From assembly GCA_907165135.1 (NCBI GenBank), contig OU015568.1, positions 6,076,001 through 6,140,000 on the forward strand: a DNA stretch of 64,000 bases. Direction: 5' to 3'. This document shows positions 48,052 to 64,000 of the stretch, in pieces (position 1 is the first letter of the stretch; the number at the start of each line of letters is the position of its first letter). The translations under genes and the position numbers were made by a program. The notes under the pieces were generated by a model. It was not told the DNA's origin, made no database searches, and saw nothing but the letters and a program-made list of their open reading frames with translations. The stretch is from Oikopleura dioica (Eukaryota > Animalia > Chordata).

Positions 48052-50777
<2,726 letters not shown>

Positions 50778-54314: not shown

Positions 54315-54566
54315 GAAAGCTTCTTTTGCAACTTTCGACTTTCTAAAGCTGGAATCAGTAGTCAAACCAAGAACCCAAAAATGGACAATACTTTGGCTTG
54401 ACTATTCCATGCTAGAGCAACTTTATTCTTTCAGAAAAGGAGCTATCTTGACAGAATAAAACTGTTCTAGCATGGAATAGTCAACCTGAAATACTGTCTA
54501 TTGCTGGCTACTTGGTTTGACTACTGATTTCAGCATTAGAAAGTCAAAAGTCGCAAAAACAGTTTC
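54315..54566. mobile_element. ~250-bp foldback/MITE-like hairpin
   Basis: TTTTGCAACTTTCGACTTTCTAAAGCTGGAATCAGTAGTCAAACCAAG and TTGACTATTCCATGCTAG each have an inverted counterpart in the right half. Confidence 0.8.
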
Positions 54567-54584
54567 GGCTAAACTTGCTCCCCA

Positions 54585-54800
54585 GTAGCCACGTGGGGCA
54601 GTTCGATCCTACGTGCCGCTAAAAAGTGCCACGACGGGCGGACCGTACTGTACCGTACCACAAGCCTGTCTGCGGCTTCACTAGACCGAAAATCGAACCA
54701 GGGGATAACCAATCGAGGGGCGCGGATCGAAAGCGGCGGCGAATGGGGGCGCCGCGCGGGGGTGGCCGAGCGGCTAAATCCTCCTTCGCCGCGCTGCCCC
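54585..54800 (+). promoter_or_regulatory. GC/CpG-rich putative promoter of the zinc-finger array gene
   Basis: GC-rich island in an AT-rich context with CACGTG and CCAAT, upstream of a probable non-coding exon (donor AAG|GTAACT near 54977). Confidence 0.45.
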
Positions 54801-55154
54801 GGCTCACTTCGACCAACGCAGCCCAGAGAAAAACTCGCCCAACGACTCTCTCGATCTCCCCATTTTAGCGACAATCCCCATCTTTGAATTAACAACGATA
54901 CCCCGAAAATAGAGAAACCCCGAGAAGACTCAACGAAGCTTGTTTTGAAAACAGAAAGAAAACAACAAACAGAAAGGTAACTTTATTTTCACTCAAAATT
55001 ATTGCTTTTGTATTGAATTATTAAGACTGAGTTATTTAATTCTAGATGCTTAAATCCCTCCTAGAGCAATCAAAAAAGCCTCTAGAACTCTTGATTGTCT
55101 GGATTAACGAATTTTCATTCAATTAATCTTTACTCGATGTCTTTTTTCAGAGAA

Positions 55155-56075
55155 ATGGATCTGAACTACCGCGAATCGGACGAAGAAGTCGTCAAGATCG
55201 AGCCCAACTCTTCGATGAGCATGGACGGCCAAGACATGACATTCGGCCTCGGAACCGGCCTCGACCAGCTTCCCTTCGGAGCCATTCCCAGTCAACAAGC
55301 AGTCGCGCAGCCAGCACCCCGAACCCCAGCCAACCCTACTGGCGGCAAGAAAGTGTCTGGGCGAGTAGAACGAGCTGCCAGAATCGCGGAATTATTCGAC
55401 GCTGGATCTCCTCGAGTCCGACTTGACCACTTCGTCTACAAAGGTATTTAAAAAGCGGGTGAATGCGTCTCATTTTGACGGCATTCTTGAGCCGACCGAG
55501 ACATTGAAAATTAGTAAGAAGAGTAGCAAAAGTTGCGTAGATGAGTTTCATAATCGATCGGCTCAGGACTGCGCGATTCTTCCTTTTTTTGATGATGAAA
55601 ATGAAAAGGTGGGGCGGGTCGGCCCGCACGCAACAGAAACCGCACTCCGCGGCTTAAAACCATTGAATTAGTTTTTCGAATTGAAATGGCTCTATTCCTG
55701 CCCCTTTTTAATGAAAAAAAAAATGTTCTGAAGCGACAAAGTAGGCAGTCGTAGGCTCGGCAACCTGTGTAAAAACTGAGTCAGGTCCTGGATCGTAAAT
55801 GAAAAGCTTTTTAGAACCCTGACTCAGGTTTTCTGCACAGGTCGCCAAGCCCAGTCCGTCCGGGCTCACCCTCCCCATTATTTCGTTTTTCGATAAAATC
55901 GGTGACGAGCTTAGTTTTAAAGATAACTCAAAAGAAGTAAGCTAATGTTAAATTCAGTCGATGACAATCCGGTCTTCGACGCTGCTCGAGTCTTTCTGGA
56001 CGGCGAGTGTCAAAACCTTGTCTATTGCTGTGACCCGAAATGCGCCGAAAAACCCACCTTCAAACGATTTTTTAG
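55155..56075 (+). CDS. Constant 5' coding exons (55155-55443, 55958-56075) of a BED/C2H2-like zinc-finger gene
   Basis: MDLNYRESDEEVVKIEP..HFVYK-V|DDNPVFDAARVFLDGECQNLVYCCDPKCAEKPTFKRFF-AG|GCAAG; GC-type donor in phase 2, matching the phase of the downstream units. Confidence 0.75.
55754..55851. repeat. ~100-bp imperfect inverted repeat in intron
   Basis: GGCTCGGCAACCTGTGTAAAAACTGAGTCAGG / CCTGACTCAGGTTTTCTGCACAGGTCGCCAAGCC. Confidence 0.75.
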
Positions 56076-56079
56076 GCAA

Positions 56080-56097
56080 GGGTCACAATCATCCCGC
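56080..56097 (+). promoter_or_regulatory. Putative docking site for mutually exclusive splicing
   Basis: GGGTCACAATCATCCCGC; its reverse complement GCGGGATGATTGTGACCC matches the motif upstream of the array acceptors. Confidence 0.8.
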
Positions 56098-56461
56098 AAA
56101 AATCAGGTTTTTAAAACCGTTTTATTTTTATGTTTCTCCTTTATTACTAACCTCGTCGTTTTATTTCGAAAAAAGACAAAAAGAACAGATGATTTCATTA
56201 TTTTTATTTATCGAATTTTTTTATTCATTCAAATCACCGTGATTTTTTTAATTCAAAATTTGTGCTGGTAAACTCTTTCGCTTGTGCTGGCAAGTTTCTT
56301 TCATTTTTCGTGTTTCGAGCTTCGAAAAAGCTCCAAAAACGAAGAAGAAATTTACCAGTACAAGCAAAATCGAAGAGGAACCAGCTGAAATGCCAAAAAT
56401 CGAGCTTTGAGTCCATAATCGTTGAAAAAAAGGTCCATTTTTTTGTGGCCCTTTTGACCAG

Positions 56462-59400
56462 TGGTCTGCGAGATAAAACACCTCACAAGGGTAATTTTCT
56501 GCGACACCACGTCAATCGCCATTCACAGTTCAAAATTCAAGCCCTGGGATTTATTCAAAAAGGATTCTAGTGATCCTTCGGCAAGTGCATTCAAACGCGG
56601 CCCGGGGAACTTGTCCTCCCAGCGATTGTACCTTCATAAGTTCACGATGCTCACGCATCATACTCGCCACCATCAAGGGTCGGGATTGTCTGCTTTTCTG
56701 GCTCTGTCCTTTTTTCACGAGTATTGTGACCCTCCCTTACTGCCCCTTCAAGCCCGGCGCTGGCTTGTATAAAAAGCGCTACTATCTCAAAAACTATCTT
56801 CTCGCGGCGCATCACAACTGTAAACATCTCAAAATTAGATCGATCTGTAACAATTTCGAGTTGGGATTAGACTCGACTTCTTCCCTTTTTGTGACCCGGA
56901 TCAAGGGCGACCGATAGTTCGAAGTTGAAGCGGCATCACCAGAGAAACCATTTTTCGCAAATGGAGAAACTCTTAGGCCCGGCTTTGTTTTTCACTTTTC
57001 ATGATTGTGTCCCTTCGCTAAAGGGGCCAGGAATCCATGGCTCAGACTAAATTCGAAGCTGAGCACAACATTGAGGCTCGGCGAATGTACATTCATCGAG
57101 GGAGCATGCTCCGCCATCACAACCGGCAGCACTCGCTCGACAGTCAAATTAGACTCAGTGAGATTTTTCTAGGCCTGGGATTTTGAAGTAGGATGATTTT
57201 GATCCTTTCTAGTGGCTTTTCGAGCCCTCTGGCCAAATACTTTCACAAGAGGAACATGATCGGCCACCACAATTTCAATCATCACGGGCGAGAAATACTC
57301 GGATAGGGATTGACTTGATCTTTGTTTAATTTTGTGATCCTCCAAAGTGGGTTTTGTCAAACAACGCTCAGCAAAAGTAAAAAGTTCTCTTTTAAAAAAG
57401 GGAACTTTTTAATTCACCACGACAGAAATCATTTTCGAAAAGATCAAAAGATTCTTCGTAAATTGGCAGGAACGGGTTTTTCTAGTGGGCTTGGTTTTTT
57501 GTACTTTGTGATCCTTTGAAGTGGCTACGATCAGACAAAAAAAGATGATCAGCCAGAACAAGTTCCATTGCCACAAATGGATGTTTATGAAACACCACAA
57601 CAGAAACCACCTCCCGAAAATTTCAGAAACGGATTTTATGTGTTTTGTGACCCTAGATTAGAGGATATAGAGCAGACAATGTAGCGGCAATGACACTTAA
57701 AAAATCGACAATGCTCGGCCACCACCAGGCCAACCACCGATTTATATCCGGTAGAGCTACTGTGGCGAAGCCCAGACTCGTTTTGGGATTTCAGTTTTTT
57801 AGAAAGAACGTATAATTTATTGTGACCCGGAATCAGAGGATACCGAGCTGACAAAGTTTCAAAATTCATGTTTCGAAAAGCGACAATGCTTGCCCACCAC
57901 GAGTCCCATCACCGACTTGTTCCCGGGAGGGGTGTTGGGCGGCCCCGTTCGAATTTCGTTTTGGGATCGCAGTTTTTGATACAATGATTTTTTGATTGAA
58001 TCATATTTTTATTTGAAGCTTTATTCTTAGTTTACTTTGTGACCCAGAAGTAGAGGCTATAGAACTGACAGCAGTTCCATGTTGATCAAAAAGTCCTACA
58101 TGCTCAGCCACCACAAATGCAACCACCGATCTGTGCCCGGCAGGGCCACTGTGGCGAAAAGATTTGTTGTTTCGGGATTTCAGATCTTCGTATTCATTTC
58201 TTTTGAGTACTCGTTATCAATGAACTCTTCCAAGTTCAAATTGTGACCCAGAATTAGACCATATAGAACGCGCGGTAATAGACTGAAGCTCAGCAGGTGG
58301 GACATGGTCGGCCACCATGAGCGGAATCACTCGGAACACGCCGGACTCTCGAAAAAGCAAATCTTGATATGGGATTTCAGATTTCATATTCTTTTCTTTT
58401 TGTGACCCAAATTAGAGGATACAGAACTAACAACATAAAAATGATGCTCAAAAAGTCGAAAATGATCAGCCATCATCAATGTAATCACGGATCTGTCTAC
58501 GGATCTCGCTGGACTGTCGAGAAAACGGATTTACTCCCGTGTAACAATTTTAGGGTAGGGTGGGTTGCGTCATTTCAGCGCTGCGCTCCCGGTACAATAC
58601 CTACCACACCGCCCGCAGCAAGCGCCTTTCTCAAAAAGCGCCATCTCTATTGGATTTTACGCTCGCTGCGGGCAGTGTGGTAGGTATTGTACCGGGAGCG
58701 CAGCGCTGAAATGACGCAACCCACCCTACCCTAAAATTGTTACAAGGGAGTAGTTTTGGGATTGTTAAACCTTTTGAGCTTGTTTTCTGTGACTCTTAGA
58801 AAAGCGGACTTCAGAAAGAAATGTCTTACTTTCACAAAACTAAGATGATGGCCCATCATCGAAATCAGCACAAAGATAAAGTATCGGATTTCAAAATTTC
58901 TTGATCATCTTTTTCGTTGAGTATTTTTCTCATTATTTTGTGACTCTTTCAAAAGTGGATATCAAAAAGGACGGAAAAAAGGCAGCGTATATTTTCATAG
59001 ATTCACGATGATGCGGCATCATAACAATTGCCACGACAATAATAGTGGACTTAACTGGCTGGGAAAAAAACTCGTCGCGTCAGAAGTTTGGGATTAGGAA
59101 CTTTGAATTATTTTCATGTGAAATACATTTGAGCGTTTCTTTTTTGTGACTCTTGGAAAAGCGGATACGAGTCAAAGAAAAATATCTTATATCTCCACAA
59201 AATTGGTTTTACTGGACATCATAAATACCACCACAAGAAAGATAAATCGATTAAATCAGTTATGGGTTCGAATATTTTAAATGTTTTCTTTCCATGATAA
59301 ATTTTTGAATTATCATCAGAATCATTATTTTTCCGGGAGTTTTTTAAAATGAATTTGTGACTCAATCAAAGCGGATATCAGAAAAGGCCAGACCATTCGC

Positions 59401-62400
59401 AATTTTACATTCACAAATATCGAATGCTTCTGCATCACAAAAACCACACCAAGAATCAATCGGCGCCGACAGTTTCGGATTTTACTTGATAAATTTTTTT
59501 TTCAATAAGAAAACTCATTTTTGTGACTCTTGAAAAAGCGGTTATCGAGGCATGGAAAACGGCGTTTTCAAATTTTTGCTGCACAAAAAAACAATGCTTC
59601 GGCATCATAAAATTAACCACGATTATTTTTATTCGCCACCAGTGAGGGATTAGAGACGAGTGACCCTTTCGTAGCGGCTGTTCGATCGACCTTCGATCGA
59701 AATCGTCGAAAATTTTCATCCACAAGCAGAAAATGCTTGGCCACCACAAGAACAATCACACTTTCAAAAAAACAGGGGATCGCTTGGGTTGACCAACGAG
59801 GGATTGGTCGCAGAGAATATTTGTTTAAAAGTTTTAAATTGAGTAGAAGTCAGTATCAATCCTTTTCTGACTTGATTTGTGACTCTATTGAAGTGGATAT
59901 CAGAAAAAGATTCTTCGATCGAAATCATCGAAAATTATCATCCACAAACAGAAAATGATTTGCCACCATAAAAATCATCATACGCCGAAGAACTATCAAA
60001 GTAGTTTTCTTGCCCAAGAAGGGAATCGGGCGTAACATGATCAGTTGTCTTTCTCTTACCCTAGAATCAATGATAATTTATAAATCAACTCATACGTGAC
60101 CCTTGACCTAAGAGGGGCTCGATATATCAAGCCCGCGAAGGATAAAATGATGCGCCACCATGAAAACAATCATTTAAATTACAGTGATAGATTTCCATTT
60201 GCAGGAAGGGATGAATTTTCTTGTGACCTTCTTCAGTGGCTATCGAACGGACTGTAAATCGCTTAGTTTGAATCGTTATGCTATGCTTGCTCATAACAGC
60301 AGAAATCATAAGATTTCGACAAAACAAGTGCGGATTTTATGAAGAATTTTTAAAAAATTATATAATATATTGTGATCCGATAAGGGGCTATGACCCAACA
60401 ACCGCTTGCGGAATGAAAAAACATAATATGATGGGCCACCACAATCGTAATCACGGTAGAAAAATGGTTGAATTGAACATTGATTTCAAAGCAAAGGGAT
60501 TTTTATAGAATCTCATCATCTTTTCGTGATATATTGTGACTCTTGAAAGCGCGGTAGATACGAGTAGGCGTGGAACACCTGGTAGAAATCCTTATGTTCA
60601 AAAGCAGAAAATGTTGCTTCATCATAAGCACAAGCACGAAAGCATAAATGCTAATTGGAGAGTTCAAGTTCGGGATTATTTTTGTGACTCTTATAGAGGA
60701 ATTTACTACAAAGCAATTCATAAGTGTTCGATGATGCAGCATCACAGAAATAACCATTTGAAAATAAATGGCTGCTGCCATTCAGGCTTTCGGGTTTTAT
60801 AGCTTTTCAATTTTTTTCTGTGGTCTTTTTGTGACTCTTTCCAGAGGAATAGACAACAACAGAACACTCACAATTCACAAGAGTTCGATGCTAAAGCATC
60901 ACAGATGGAATCACGTGAAAGTTAACTCAGGCTTTTGGGGTTTTAAGATTTTCAAGAGGAGATTTTTTGTGGTGTTTTTGTGACTCTTGCTAGAGGAATC
61001 TTCGGCAGCGCGAAATTTACACTCAAGAAAAGTGCGATGCTACAGCATCACAGATGCAATCACGCGAAACTTAATTCAGGCTTTTTGGGGTTTAGGATTT
61101 TCCAAAGAAAGCGGTTTTCATCGAAGACAATCATTTTGGGTTTCATACCAGGTAGTTTTCCAAAGTGAAAGATTTTTTCTGTGGTCTTTTTGTGACTCTT
61201 TCAAGAGGAATTTGCAACAACAAAACTCTCTCAATTCACAAGAGTACGATGCTAAAGCATCACCGATGTAATCATGTGAAAGTAACTTCAGGCTTTTGGG
61301 GTTTATGATTTCTCGGAGTGGGCAATTTTTTCTGTGGTGTATTGCGACCCTTGCTAGAGGAATATTCAATCGTTCAATTCACAAATTTTCGATGATGCAG
61401 CATCACAATAATAATCATCACGGGAGAAATAAATCAGGTTTTCGGGTTTTAGGATTTTTTGAAATCTTTTTTTTATGATGTGACCCAGTACAGTCCCTAC
61501 ATTAGATCTTCGATTCACAAGGCAACAATGCTGAGGCATCATAAAGCTAATCATTCCTCCCAAAAAGCAGCGAGAGCTCAAACAGGAAAGCGGGATATTG
61601 TGATCTTTGGTAGAGGCTTCCAGCGTGGTTCCAGGGGAATCAATTCGATTCATAAATGCACTATGTTGAAGCATCATGGTTACAACCATGCGACAACAAA
61701 ATCAGGCCTTTTGGGTTTAGCTATTTCTTCTGAATTCGGGATATTGTGATCTTTGACAGTGGTTTTCAGCGTTCCAGCCATAAGAGGAAAACTTACATTC
61801 ACAAGCAGACGATGCTCAGTCATCATGACCGTGAGCACGGGAAAGCTTTGGAGAAAACACTTTTTAACTGAAATCATGATTTTCGTGACCCTTTTAAGTG
61901 GATTGACTAAGAGACGAGAGCATGAGCCTTTAGGTCCTCATCGAAAGTCGATGCTTAGACATTCTGACACTCATCACGGTACTAATTTTCAACGTAAAGG
62001 CGAGGATTTTTTGAAAATGACGAGACTTTTCGGCCCAATTTTAATAGACGGGATTCTTCGAGACTGAAATGATTGTGACCCAAATTTTTAGTGGAATGGA
62101 GCGCAGAAGAGCTTTCAATACTTTGAAGCCTCAACGCTCAAAGTTCTATCAGCACTCGGATAATAATCATGGCACTTATTATCGGTTCTTACGGGGCGTA
62201 GGAACGGGATTTAACTATTGTGACTCTTTTCAAAGCGGAATGAGGCCAAAAGGGCAATATAAAGCTGATAAAAGTAACATGGAAGTTCACAAGCGTAATT
62301 TCAATTCGCACTCGGACCATAACCACGGAACGAATATTGTTCAGTCCGAAATGTTTGCTAGATTAGAGCGGGATATGAAGAATTAATCTTTCCTTCTTAT

Positions 62401-64000
62401 TGTGGCCCTTTTTCAAAGTGGAATGAGACCCAATGGCACTACAATTCATACATCCGCTATGAGACAGCATCATAAGTGGAATCATTTTTCGAAATTGGAA
62501 AAAGGCTTTTGGGCTTTTATAATGAGATATTTTTGTGTACCCTTTCGAAAGCGGAATGAGACCGAGCGGAAAAGATATTCACAAGCACAACTTCAATTCG
62601 CACCATTTTCATAACCATGGAACGAATATGATGAAGTCCAAAGTATCCGGCAAATTAGAGCGGGATAGAATCTCAGTCTTGAAAAACACCATTTTCTTAC
62701 TCATATCATCTCATATTCATATCATCACTGTCTCCTGATTTCGATAAATCTCGATTGTGACCCCAACTAGTGGCTACGCGGGTGGTTATGAAAACCTTCA
62801 TAACAAGAAACTGAATTTCCACAAAAGAACTATGGTCACCCATCACAGGAATAATCATAAATCAGCCGGGGATTGTATTTGTGAAATTTTTGCGAGATGT
62901 TTTGTGACTCTGAAAGTCAATCTGCTTGCCGATTTATCCATAAGGGGAGCTTGAATCGACACCACAAAACTCATCATTTGTCGAAAGAATGGGAATTTAG
63001 ACTTGATTGTGACCCATTTGATAGTGGCATTTCTAAAAAAGAGATTTGCCTCAAGAAACAAATCTCGATTGAAAGTGAGAAAAAATATGGCTATTACATC
63101 CACAATAAATCTTTTGTTGGACATCATACCATCCATCATTTGCCAAAAAAAGAATAAAGTCGGGGTTGATTTTTCATTTTTTTTTATTTCGAGGTTGATT
63201 GTGATCCATTGTTAGCGGACTGCATTTCAGAAACAGAGCAATTTACAACAACAAAAAACAATTTTTGCAGCATCACAAAAAACACGGCCATTTTGAAAAA
63301 GGGATTGAAAGTAATTGTGACCTTGTAAAGTGGCGTGGACGTAAGAACAAAATCTAAAATAACCAAAAAACTTCACATGTCTTCGCATCACATCGCTCAT
63401 CATTCGCAAAATACAAGGAAAAAAGCAAAGGGATGAATTTTCAATTCATTGTGATCCTCTAAAGTTCCCCGTCGACTCAAAAACTAGACTTGCATCACTA
63501 CCGCCAGCATATGAAAAAAGTAATGACCAGAGCTCAGATGGGCGAGCTTCTCGGCCCGCGTCTGAAAGCTTTGATTCGCGAAGGGAAGGGGGATGAAATT
63601 GTATTTTGTTAAACGATTGTGGCCCTTTCTAGCGCTATTGATGTTCGATGTAAGAATCCAGCGATAAATGCGAAGCATACGCTCTCCCATCATGTCGCTA
63701 GTCACCTGAATATTCAAAAAATTGGAAAAGCCAACACGGCAATTTTGCTAGAAATTGTTCGAGCCTCTGAAGCGTATCAAGAGTTGGGATGGCTTTTTTC
63801 GCTATCTCTTGTTTTTTTAATTGCGGATTTGATTTTTAAAATTGTGATCCTTTGTCTAGTGGAGTTGATGTAAGAAAGAAAAACCCAATAATCCATCACC
63901 ATAGTTTCCTCTGCCATCACCTGATAAATCACCGTCGAGTTTATATCGCAAGAGGTACTAATGTCGAAACTTTGCGTTTTATGTTGCAAGGGAGGGATTA
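56462..64000 (+). CDS. Array of at least 45 candidate mutually exclusive exons, each encoding a His half of a zinc finger
   Basis: Unit = TTGTGAYYY, ~5-9 nt, AG | N GGN TAY.. (xGY..HKxxMxxHHxxNH..). First exon bases: 56462, 56586, 56753, 56906, 57024, 57213, 57348, 57522, 57662, 57837, 58054, 58258, 58416, 58805, 58956, 59162, 59372, 59539, 59675, 59894, 60113, 60237, 60385, 60550, 60697, 60845, 60994, 61206, 61358, 61494, 61614, 61760, 61899, 62092, 62236, 62419, 62552, 62771, 62917, 63025, 63216, 63331, 63465, 63633, 63860. Confidence 0.85.
58534..58750. mobile_element. 217-bp Tc1/mariner-type (Stowaway-like) MITE with TA TSD inside array exon 13
   Basis: TA|CTCCC..GGGAG|TA with ~85-bp near-perfect TIRs; removing it restores KTDLVLG, like sibling exons ending RLVLG and NFVLG. 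Confidence 0.92.

Follow-up and report, generated by a model that had tools for sequence, protein, structure and literature searches.

A probable docking-selector array of alternative half-finger exons in a larvacean gene

The last part of a 64,000-nucleotide (nt) stretch of Oikopleura dioica genomic DNA (contig OU015568.1, positions 6,076,001 to 6,140,000; hereafter the window) is best explained as belonging to one protein-coding gene, in which two constant 5' exons are followed by a cluster of variable cassette exons and, beyond the window, by a large constant 3' part. The gene probably holds about 55 cassettes in total, about 45 of them inside the window. We consider it very likely that they form a docking-selector array of the type found in the exon 6 cluster of Drosophila Dscam1, where this form of mutually exclusive splicing is known (PMC4691838, PMC8791459, PMC6071210). 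Under the mechanism that we propose, cassettes would be chosen by competing RNA pairing, in which the 35 nt directly after exon 2, at the start of the intron, would form a docking site able to pair with one selector (GGGAT...ATTGTGACCC(TT)) at a time, placing the acceptor of the chosen cassette beside the exon-2 donor. The cassette donor, located at a GGGAT motif (G|GGAT, GG|GAT or AG|GCYTGGGAT), would pair in its turn with AAATCCCA, 8-15 nt before the downstream acceptor. Both splice sites of a cassette look weak alone, the array holds no copy of either complementary motif, and each mRNA would complete an N-terminal zinc-finger-like (BED-like) domain with one alternative half.

Variable exons between constant exons

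Between positions 56112 and 64000 a loose His-helix pattern matched 47 times on the + strand, compared with 8 times on the opposite strand. After inspection, 44 units combine a phase-2 AG-type acceptor position with a frame that is unbroken from the acceptor through the last His, and one extra unit (acceptor 57522, helix ~57596), whose frame shifts by 1 base across an A8 run, brings the total to the 45 or more that a preliminary description of this DNA had reported; the extra unit is either a pseudo-exon or a homopolymer assembly error. The spacing of ~110-390 nt given in that description was also reproduced (108-389 nt from acceptor to acceptor, median 157), and the array is cut by the window end, as had been stated. 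Its rule that each unit opens with AG|N-GGN held in part: the junction codon is AGN (Ser or Arg) in all units, but GG follows N in only 35/44. The unit at 56743 has TG instead of AG before the exon in the window genome, and its orthologue is used in a sister lineage. The consensus of a unit is [S/R]-G-[aromatic/aliphatic], a loop of 2-30 residues and psi-H-K-x-x-M-L-x-H-H-x-x-N-H, with a conserved helix psi-x-x-H-H-x3-H. Tandem Repeats Finder did not detect the array, from which we take the units to be old and diverged, with only motif islands retained, and Rfam gave no family match in 54500-64000.

The exons measure ~70-155 nt, and the spacers from predicted donor to next acceptor have a median of ~52 nt, nine of them being <=35 nt. 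Since a GGG run supplies a G-start intron in every phase, phase-locking of the GGGAT motif is uninformative as a test of donors, and we used the open frame instead: the frame stays open from the last His to a GGGAT-like motif in 39/40 units, compared with 25/40 and 21/40 in the other two frames, and in 43/44 units a G-start donor candidate in phase 1 precedes the first stop. The donor positions, and with them the 3' ends, of individual window units are predictions.

Exon 2 ends in ...YCCDPKCAEKPTFKRFF plus AG, followed by GCAAGG, a phase-2 GC donor in the window sequence. A scan of metagenome contigs with a pattern for the end of exon 2 found 7 contigs; the transcripts among our sources are environmental metatranscriptome contigs (Joint Genome Institute (JGI) samples) of sister lineages, and the genomic copies compared are L003 (GCA_977009715.1), L005, L006, L007 and L011 (the O. 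dioica Bergen reference, FN653025.1). Exon 1 is spliced to exon 2 in contigs L001, L002 and L010, and the sister-lineage contigs that resemble complementary DNA use exactly the phase-2 GC donor that the preliminary description had placed at the end of exon 2. A canonical CAG|GTTTTT at 56107 was considered as the exon-2 donor and rejected, being in phase 0 and unfit for the unit frame, with 3/3 spliced contigs using 56075. The protein sequence of exon 2 is the same in all lineages compared and its DNA differs at synonymous sites. The exon 1 protein is represented by 11 database clusters at 64-77% identity; a search of a representative library with exon 1 gave matches only among these larvacean clusters, and no database protein was identical to that of the window.

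The predicted splicing of exon 2 to individual array members was borne out for three different units, to which its end (...TTTTTTAG|) is joined in L001/L004, L008 and L010. In L001/L004 (protein P0008) the partner is the orthologue of window unit 3, in L008 it is a unit beginning RGYRHVD, and in L010 it is the unit that closes the Bergen-type array. When L010 was set against genomic L011, from the same lineage, intron 1 and ~6.4 kb up to an acceptor after a selector proved to have been removed; two acceptors were checked against the DNA of L011 in this way. Past the unit, L010 contains a 583-codon open frame that runs to a poly(A) signal and corresponds to the frame of O. dioica CBY18270.1/E4X4Q2, and the constant 3' part expected beyond the window would be orthologous to that protein. 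At the other end, L014 (P0023) and L015 (P0031) each show a unit, different in the two, spliced to ...|CCAGTCAAGCC of the downstream constant exon; P0023 reads ...MLRHHSRQHSIADQIRLGQIFL|ASQAKNAQQ and P0031 reads ...MIAHHKNNHENTNNTSDSK|ASQAKNAQQ (same 90% clusters). From a genomic-type comparison with L001, the L014 donor is TTTTTAG|GCTTGGGATT, in phase 1, and by analogy the L015 donor would be AAAG|GGATTT, likewise in phase 1. The donors of both downstream junctions are thus non-canonical, GC and GG, at the GGGAT motif, in a species in which 11-12% of introns are non-GT-AG and many are GA-AG (PMC8008620, PMC7072748). The acceptor candidates 'tttacag|g' and 'gcacag|t' for the downstream open reading frame (ORF) were rejected, as they are unconserved between lineages and the junction seen is ccaaag|CCAGTC. 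The downstream constant exon was seen in the sister loci L003, L010 and L011, and in the window's own gene we would expect the remaining units past 64000, followed by ...AAATCCCATACCAAAG|CCAGTCAAGCC and the constant part.

All five junctions are of the expected type, and none of the five contigs contains a unit-to-unit junction. The exon 2 donor and the unit acceptor are in phase 2, and the unit donor and the downstream acceptor in phase 1, so that every unit is 3n+2 nt long and inclusion of 0, 2 or 3 units shifts the frame, while one unit keeps it. We infer that one unit per mRNA is used strictly in vivo. Steric exclusion by spacers too short to splice was rejected as a general rule, since the median of ~52 nt is that of a normal O. 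dioica intron (PMC8008620).

The same contigs bear on an alternative in which the units would mainly be alternative terminal exons at the 3' end, on the pattern of lola and mod(mdg4), yielding proteins of ~170-200 residues, with the downstream protein of 510-570 residues as a separate product. Beyond the unit that was chosen, L001, L008 and L010 follow the genome colinearly and meet an in-frame stop within a short distance, AATAAA is found at the stop of P0008, and no G-start phase-1 donor is present in the last unit of the Bergen array, L010 retaining the last intron yet ending with a poly(A) signal; furthermore, the downstream ORF has its own ATG in some lineages (P0014, P0029), and window unit 39 lacks a donor candidate. 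However, the variable exons of P0023 and P0031 are not terminal but continue in frame, by splicing, into the downstream exon, nearly all units keep their frame open as far as the GGGAT motif, as given above, the downstream ORF of the Bergen lineage is open and conserved for ~70 codons upstream of its first Met, and the donor motif pairs with the element before the downstream acceptor above controls (see below). We regard a mainly terminal array as improbable, and terminal and cassette use may coexist.

An additional Cys/His tail, KCSLHCPAH, marks the last Bergen-type unit (L010 forward 556-690; L011:9466-9600), whose donor motif is degenerate, with TTGGTGTTT in place of TTGGGATTT. Because L010 keeps the intron after it, this unit may yield a short terminal isoform.

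Complementarity at the two ends of the cassettes

A selector, GGGAT...TTGTGACCC, complementary to the docking block at the start of the variable intron, lies 4-10 nt before every acceptor, and the region between units has a common layout of GGGAT(T), a variable spacer, (A/T)TTGTGAC(C/T)C(TT), a gap of 4-8 nt and AG. The docking-block sequence GGGTCACA is present once in 64 kb. The selector core TGTGACCC has 12 exact copies, all within 56029-63008, 11 of them in the array and 1 in exon 2, and the reverse complement of TGTGACCC has a single copy in 64 kb, at 56080. The complementarity reaches a second half (GGGAT/ATCCC): intron positions 3-21 after exon 2, when reverse-complemented, read CGGGATGATTGTGACCCTT, and units 30 and 31 contain both halves contiguously, giving 18-21 contiguous pairs. 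The docking block also holds a small A5/T5 hairpin. In the array, GGGAT occurs 29 times and ATCCC 0 times, and TGTGAC 26 times and GTCACA 0 times; lacking ATCCC and GTCACA, the units cannot dock with one another.

Using RNAduplex, we paired 56076-56112 with the 70 nt preceding each of 43 acceptors and obtained a mean of -24.9 kcal/mol, compared with -13.8 in 1000 other AG-ending windows and -11.7 kcal/mol against exon bodies. Shuffled docking sites gave a mean of -13.3 +/- 1.3 and at best -20.3 kcal/mol, so that none was as low as the observed mean, and 43/43 acceptors tested pair through the core at 56079-56090. The same energy test in the Bergen locus gave -27.2 vs -15.5 (p = 6e-10). The docking 35 nt are the same in 6 lineage sequences save for one C/T, in an intron that is otherwise unalignable, and this intronic block is better conserved than the synonymous sites of the adjoining exon 2. 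When one orthologous unit was aligned over 3 lineages, the selector, acceptor, exon and GGGAT donor motif stood out as conserved islands. Substitutions in the selector core preserve pairing by G.U wobble in 29 cases (C>T opposite G, A>G opposite U) and break it in 11, and TTGTG, in which any change would break a pair, is near-invariant; as judged from these sequences, the pattern is that of an RNA helix. We infer that pairing is the cause of cassette choice.

An alternative grants that the exons are real and alternative and denies that complementarity selects them: TTGTGACCC would be a branch-point or protein-binding element, and the complement at the donor a duplication relic or a sequence with another role, such as donor masking. 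The selector does contain TGAC, which resembles yUnAy and whose distance from the acceptor would suit a branch point in a genome with short introns, the 5' splice-site region and the docking core overlap, and, given the sense copy of TGTGACCC at 56029 in exon 2, the motif could have been seeded in the course of duplication. Neither a branch point nor a protein site explains, however, why C>T and A>G are tolerated only where a G.U wobble keeps the pairing, why complementarity extends into the second half, with the long contiguous helices of units 30 and 31, or why the docking block is better conserved than the neighbouring exon's synonymous sites, and the exon-2 copy itself varies at a synonymous site in Bergen-type sequences (TGC for TGT). 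We consider selection by something other than pairing to have only a small chance of being correct.

The exon-2 copy of the selector core (56029-56036, encoding C-D-P) could itself pair with the docking site, which would leave the donor in a 43-nt loop. The case for such a hairpin as a conserved regulator is weakened by the Bergen-type copy, TGCGACCC, which carries the synonymous change TGC for TGT.

A second docking site is likely to exist at the downstream acceptor, as a short helix with an element that lies outside the window. In L003, L010, L011, L012 and L013 the downstream acceptor is preceded by ...GTCAAATCCCATACCAAAG|, and the candidate element AAATCCCA, which is the complement of TGGGATTT, occurs there in 3 lineage forms. 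In the Bergen locus, pairing of the 31 nt before this acceptor with the 90 nt after each unit helix gave -14.8 vs -10.1 (p = 1.8e-5), and for the window units the values were -14.7 vs -10.6 in control windows. Among 200 shuffles of the docking sequence (mean -11.7 +/- 1.1, best -14.6) none reached the mean observed in the window.

The variable intron contains, 70 nt from its start, a TACTAAC box that is conserved in all six lineage sequences amid unalignable surroundings. The closeness of the selector TGAC to the acceptor leaves little room for a conventional branch site, and it is speculation on our part that the box serves as a branch point common to all cassette acceptors.

A further possibility is that tandem exon duplications left behind a decaying array that no longer has a function, or that the array is an artefact of assembly. 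This view draws on the one frameshifted unit, the one TG acceptor and the few units that have no clear donor. It is hard to reconcile with 44/45 units that keep both frame and ligand residues, with motif islands conserved among lineages, with five spliced junctions in RNA-derived contigs and with the occurrence of such arrays in at least 4 independent assemblies, and we think it extremely unlikely.

The split domain and its relation to known systems

The 3' end of exon 1 together with exon 2 encodes a helix, a three-stranded sheet and a C-x4-C knuckle, and each cassette adds a variable loop, a helix with a His pair (H-x4-H) and a variable tail. The zinc finger split between exons that the preliminary description proposed is thus present insofar as the Cys pair is in exon 2 and the His pair in the unit, but its spacing is not the classical one: the Cys pair and the His pair are 28-45 residues apart, compared with 12 in a Krueppel-type finger, and the domain falls outside the classical C2H2 pattern (C-x2-4-C-x12-H-x3-5-H, Pfam zf-C2H2). 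Pfam gave no match at E <= 10 for exon 1, exon 2, P0008, P0015, P0017 or P0023, sequence searches of the PDB with P0015 and with a domain profile returned nothing relevant, and Foldseek found no match in the PDB at E <= 0.001. Inside the constant part there is an unsplit paralogue of the split domain, sharing the pattern RV-LDGEC..L..C..P.C..KP...K...H....H (invariant positions common to both: D, F, RV-LDGEC, L, C, P, C, KP, K, H, H), so that a variable and a fixed copy would be combined in each long isoform.

AlphaFold2 models of the two, built on a shallow alignment, had predicted local distance difference test (pLDDT) scores of 80.8 and 77.8 and consist of a helix, a three-stranded sheet and a C-terminal helix with the His pair. 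In an all-against-representatives structural alignment, the BED domain of the Hermes transposase (PDB 8eb5) came first for both models, with Z 5.2, root-mean-square deviation (rmsd) 3.2 and 71/74 residues aligned for the split domain and Z 4.5, rmsd 3.3 and 69/74 for the unsplit paralogue, both below the tool's noise guide of 7-8; the Hermes rows lie ~1-1.5 Z above the next rows, in a range that the tool calls common. As in the BED domain of Hermes, a hAT transposase, the predicted models have CCHH ligands with the His pair on the C-terminal helix; unlike it, the knuckle is C-x4-C rather than C-x2-C, and there is no zf-BED or PDB sequence match. The sequence accordingly departs from the BED signature C-x2-C...H-x3-5-[HC] and does not match the PF02892 profile. 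The models weakly suggest a CCHH BED-like finger, as a lead and not as family membership, and the domain would be expected to bind zinc and nucleic acid.

Several observations weigh against a docking-selector cassette array. With respect to splicing, the ~52-nt median spacing is that of a normal O. dioica intron, so that geometry alone permits unit-to-unit splicing; in a few units the donor is unconvincing or the acceptor is not AG; neither the downstream constant exon nor the second docking site falls within the window; and all transcript evidence comes from other lineages, with 64-78% identity in exon 1. No contig unites exon 2, one unit and exon 4. The three contigs that join exon 2 to a unit run on unspliced into the array or the last intron, and L015 begins with 7 nt of upstream intron, which could mean that mature and nascent RNA are mixed in the assemblies or that short isoforms end in the unit. 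With respect to pairing, intron positions +3 to +6, which U1 and U6 must read, overlap with the docking core, and the selector holds the branch-point-like TGAC 9-13 nt from the acceptor, so that pairing could hinder as well as help; moreover, docking site and selectors show no covariation, both partners being simply conserved. For the domain, Pfam has no match and the fold Z-scores remain under the noise guide.

The array resembles the Dscam1 exon 6 cluster in being a tandem series of tens of homologous cassettes between constant exons, in having one conserved docking site in the intron that follows the upstream constant exon and a complementary selector before every variable exon, which would allow one pairing at a time, and in varying in size between lineages. 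It differs from Dscam1 in its chordate host and in its product, which is not an immunoglobulin (Ig)-superfamily receptor and in which one half of a zinc-finger-like domain varies. Here the docking site is on the donor (+5) and the selectors are 4-10 nt from the acceptor, so that pairing would juxtapose the splice sites themselves. Unlike those of Dscam1, the cassette donors are non-canonical (GC, GG, GA), in a motif complementary to the second candidate docking site, and the exons (~70-155 nt) and spacers (~50 nt) are short.

In Drosophila lola and mod(mdg4), constant BTB exons are joined to many alternative zinc-finger 3' exons; these lie at the 3' end of the transcript and encode complete fingers, and some of the joining occurs by trans-splicing. 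The likeness lies in one gene giving many isoforms that differ in a zinc-finger module, implying many binding specificities, whereas the Oikopleura cassettes are internal half-fingers joined in cis to a downstream constant part. In vertebrates, competing RNA structures pick between duplicated exons in clusters such as those of ATE1 and DNM1, which hold 2 exons, compared with ~45-55 here, and do not diversify a module of nucleic-acid-binding type. To our knowledge, large docking-selector clusters have been described essentially in arthropods, in Dscam1 and a small number of other genes, and a literature search found no description of this locus, nor of such an array in a chordate or in a nucleic-acid-binding-type domain. 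The kind of mechanism is therefore known; what appears to be new is the chordate host, the scale outside arthropods and the half-finger target, as well as the placement of the pairing elements next to the splice sites, the non-canonical donor sites and a candidate docking system with two sides.

If the docking-selector reading is correct, the vertebrates' sister group has independently evolved a cluster of Dscam1 scale, and what this cluster diversifies is a putative nucleic-acid-binding module instead of a cell-surface receptor. The locus would tie the mechanism of one-exon choice to the tolerance of Oikopleura for non-GT donors, and its compact geometry (exons ~100 nt, spacers ~50 nt) makes the whole system minigene-sized, so that the long-debated choice of one exon becomes directly testable. 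Tentatively, we go further and picture ~55 interchangeable recognition halves, joined through two-sided RNA docking of crippled non-canonical sites, possibly with one TACTAAC branch point, as a fast-evolving recognition repertoire. This would be a splicing-based counterpart of expanded zinc-finger gene families, supplying nucleic-acid-recognition specificities from a single locus, for example against mobile elements or for cell identity.

Coordinates, sister loci and neighbouring features

Table 1. Positions of the constant exons, intronic elements and variable units in the window.
Feature	Position	Strand	Remark
Probable 5' untranslated region (UTR) intron	54977-55150	+	upstream of exon 1 ATG
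Constant coding exon 1	55155..55443	+	ATG at 55155; phase-1 GT donor after 55443
Constant exon 2	55958..56075	+	encodes beta-sheet and Cys pair (C-x4-C) of split domain
Docking block, start of variable intron	56076..56110	+	GC donor GCAAG, core, distal half, hairpin
Docking core GGGTCACAAT	56080-56089	+	begins at intron position +5
Distal docking half ATCCCG	56091-56096	+	within docking block
TACTAAC box	56145..56151	+	perfect branch-point consensus; sole copy in 64-kb window
Array of 45 variable cassette exons, selectors and GGGAT-type donor motifs	56394..64000	+	continues past window end
Unit 1 (SGL...HHVNRH)	56462..56562	+	3' end predicted
Unit 2	56586..56677	+	3' end predicted
Unit 3 (SPFKPGAG...)	56743..56864	+	TG not AG before exon; orthologue joined to exon 2 in L001/P0008
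Unit 4, short	56906..56976	+	3' end predicted
Unit 5 (RGQESMAQTKFEAE...)	57024..57172	+	donor CTAG|GCCTGGGAT; orthologous donor used in L014/P0023 (...QIFL|ASQ)
Unit 6 (SGFSSPLAKYFHKRNMIGHHNFNH)	57213..57301	+	3' end predicted
Unit 7	57348..57469	+	3' end predicted
Frameshifted unit	57522..57610	+	acceptor frame SGY... vs His helix KFHCHKWMFMKHHNRNH, 1 base off across A8
Unit 8 (RGYRADNVAAM...)	57662..57786	+	3' end predicted
Unit 9	57837..57925	+	alternative donor at 57964
Unit 10	58054..58175	+	
Unit 11	58258..58370	+	
Unit 12	58416..58558	+	donor uncertain; 246-nt spacer after
Unit 13	58805..58902	+	no clear donor
Unit 14	58956..59089	+	
Unit 15	59162..59265	+	
Unit 16	59372..59487	+	no clear donor
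Unit 17	59539..59645	+	
Unit 18	59675..59775	+	
Unit 19	59894..60021	+	
Unit 20	60113..60204	+	
Unit 21	60237..60331	+	
Unit 22	60385..60497	+	
Unit 23	60550..60671	+	
Unit 24 (RGIYYKAIHKCSMMQHHRNNH)	60697..60785	+	
Unit 25	60845..60930	+	donor TCAG|GCTTTTGGG
Unit 26	60994..61079	+	
Unit 27	61206..61291	+	
Unit 28	61358..61437	+	candidate GT donor
Unit 29	61494..61585	+	
Unit 30	61614..61705	+	selector CGGGATATTGTGATC, contiguous match to docking site
Unit 31	61760..61839	+	contiguous selector as in unit 30; no clear donor
Unit 32	61899..61999	+	
Unit 33	62092..62201	+	
Unit 34	62236..62369	+	
Unit 35	62419..62504	+	
Unit 36	62552..62661	+	
Unit 37	62771..62868	+	
Unit 38	62917..63008	+	atypical start AG|TCA; no clear donor
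Unit 39	63025..63139	+	long loop; no phase-1 donor candidate before stop at 63155; may be a terminal or dead unit
Unit 40	63216..63301	+	donor AAAG|GGATTG, same type as L015 junction
Unit 41	63331..63431	+	
Unit 42, short loop	63465..63583	+	
Unit 43	63633..63787	+	
Unit 44	63860..63954	+	last in window

The Bergen locus contains about 13-19 units (about 17 as a working figure), compared with at least 45 in the window, which points to a roughly three-fold expansion of the array in the window's lineage. The Bergen array is broken by large insertions, a repeat-flanked element of ~2.5 kb at L011:5700-8200 and an ORF-bearing insert of ~600 nt inside a unit at L011:3970-4560, and we take the array to be a target of mobile elements that the variable intron tolerates.

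CBY18270.1/E4X4Q2 is annotated as a protein of 510 residues, and the reference annotation models the 3' constant part alone, so that the gene sets now in use miss the locus. The O. dioica reference project contains two diverged copies of the constant part on different scaffolds (P0015 vs P0029), CBY18270.1 on FN653025.1 and CBY10068.1/CBY34479.1 on another scaffold. These may be alleles, cryptic lineages or paralogues, and if they are paralogues a second array is possible.

Intron 1 of the window contains a long palindrome at 55748-55862 (arms ~55771-55785 and 55818-55832, extending outwards) with the look of an insertion of the miniature inverted-repeat transposable element (MITE) type; it is missing from the much shorter intron 1 of L003 and L011. 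Upstream, on the + strand, a multi-exon gene at 48052-50700 encodes a product with a mucin-like Thr-rich stretch and with a motif, recognised by eye, that we take to be glycoside-hydrolase-family-9-like.

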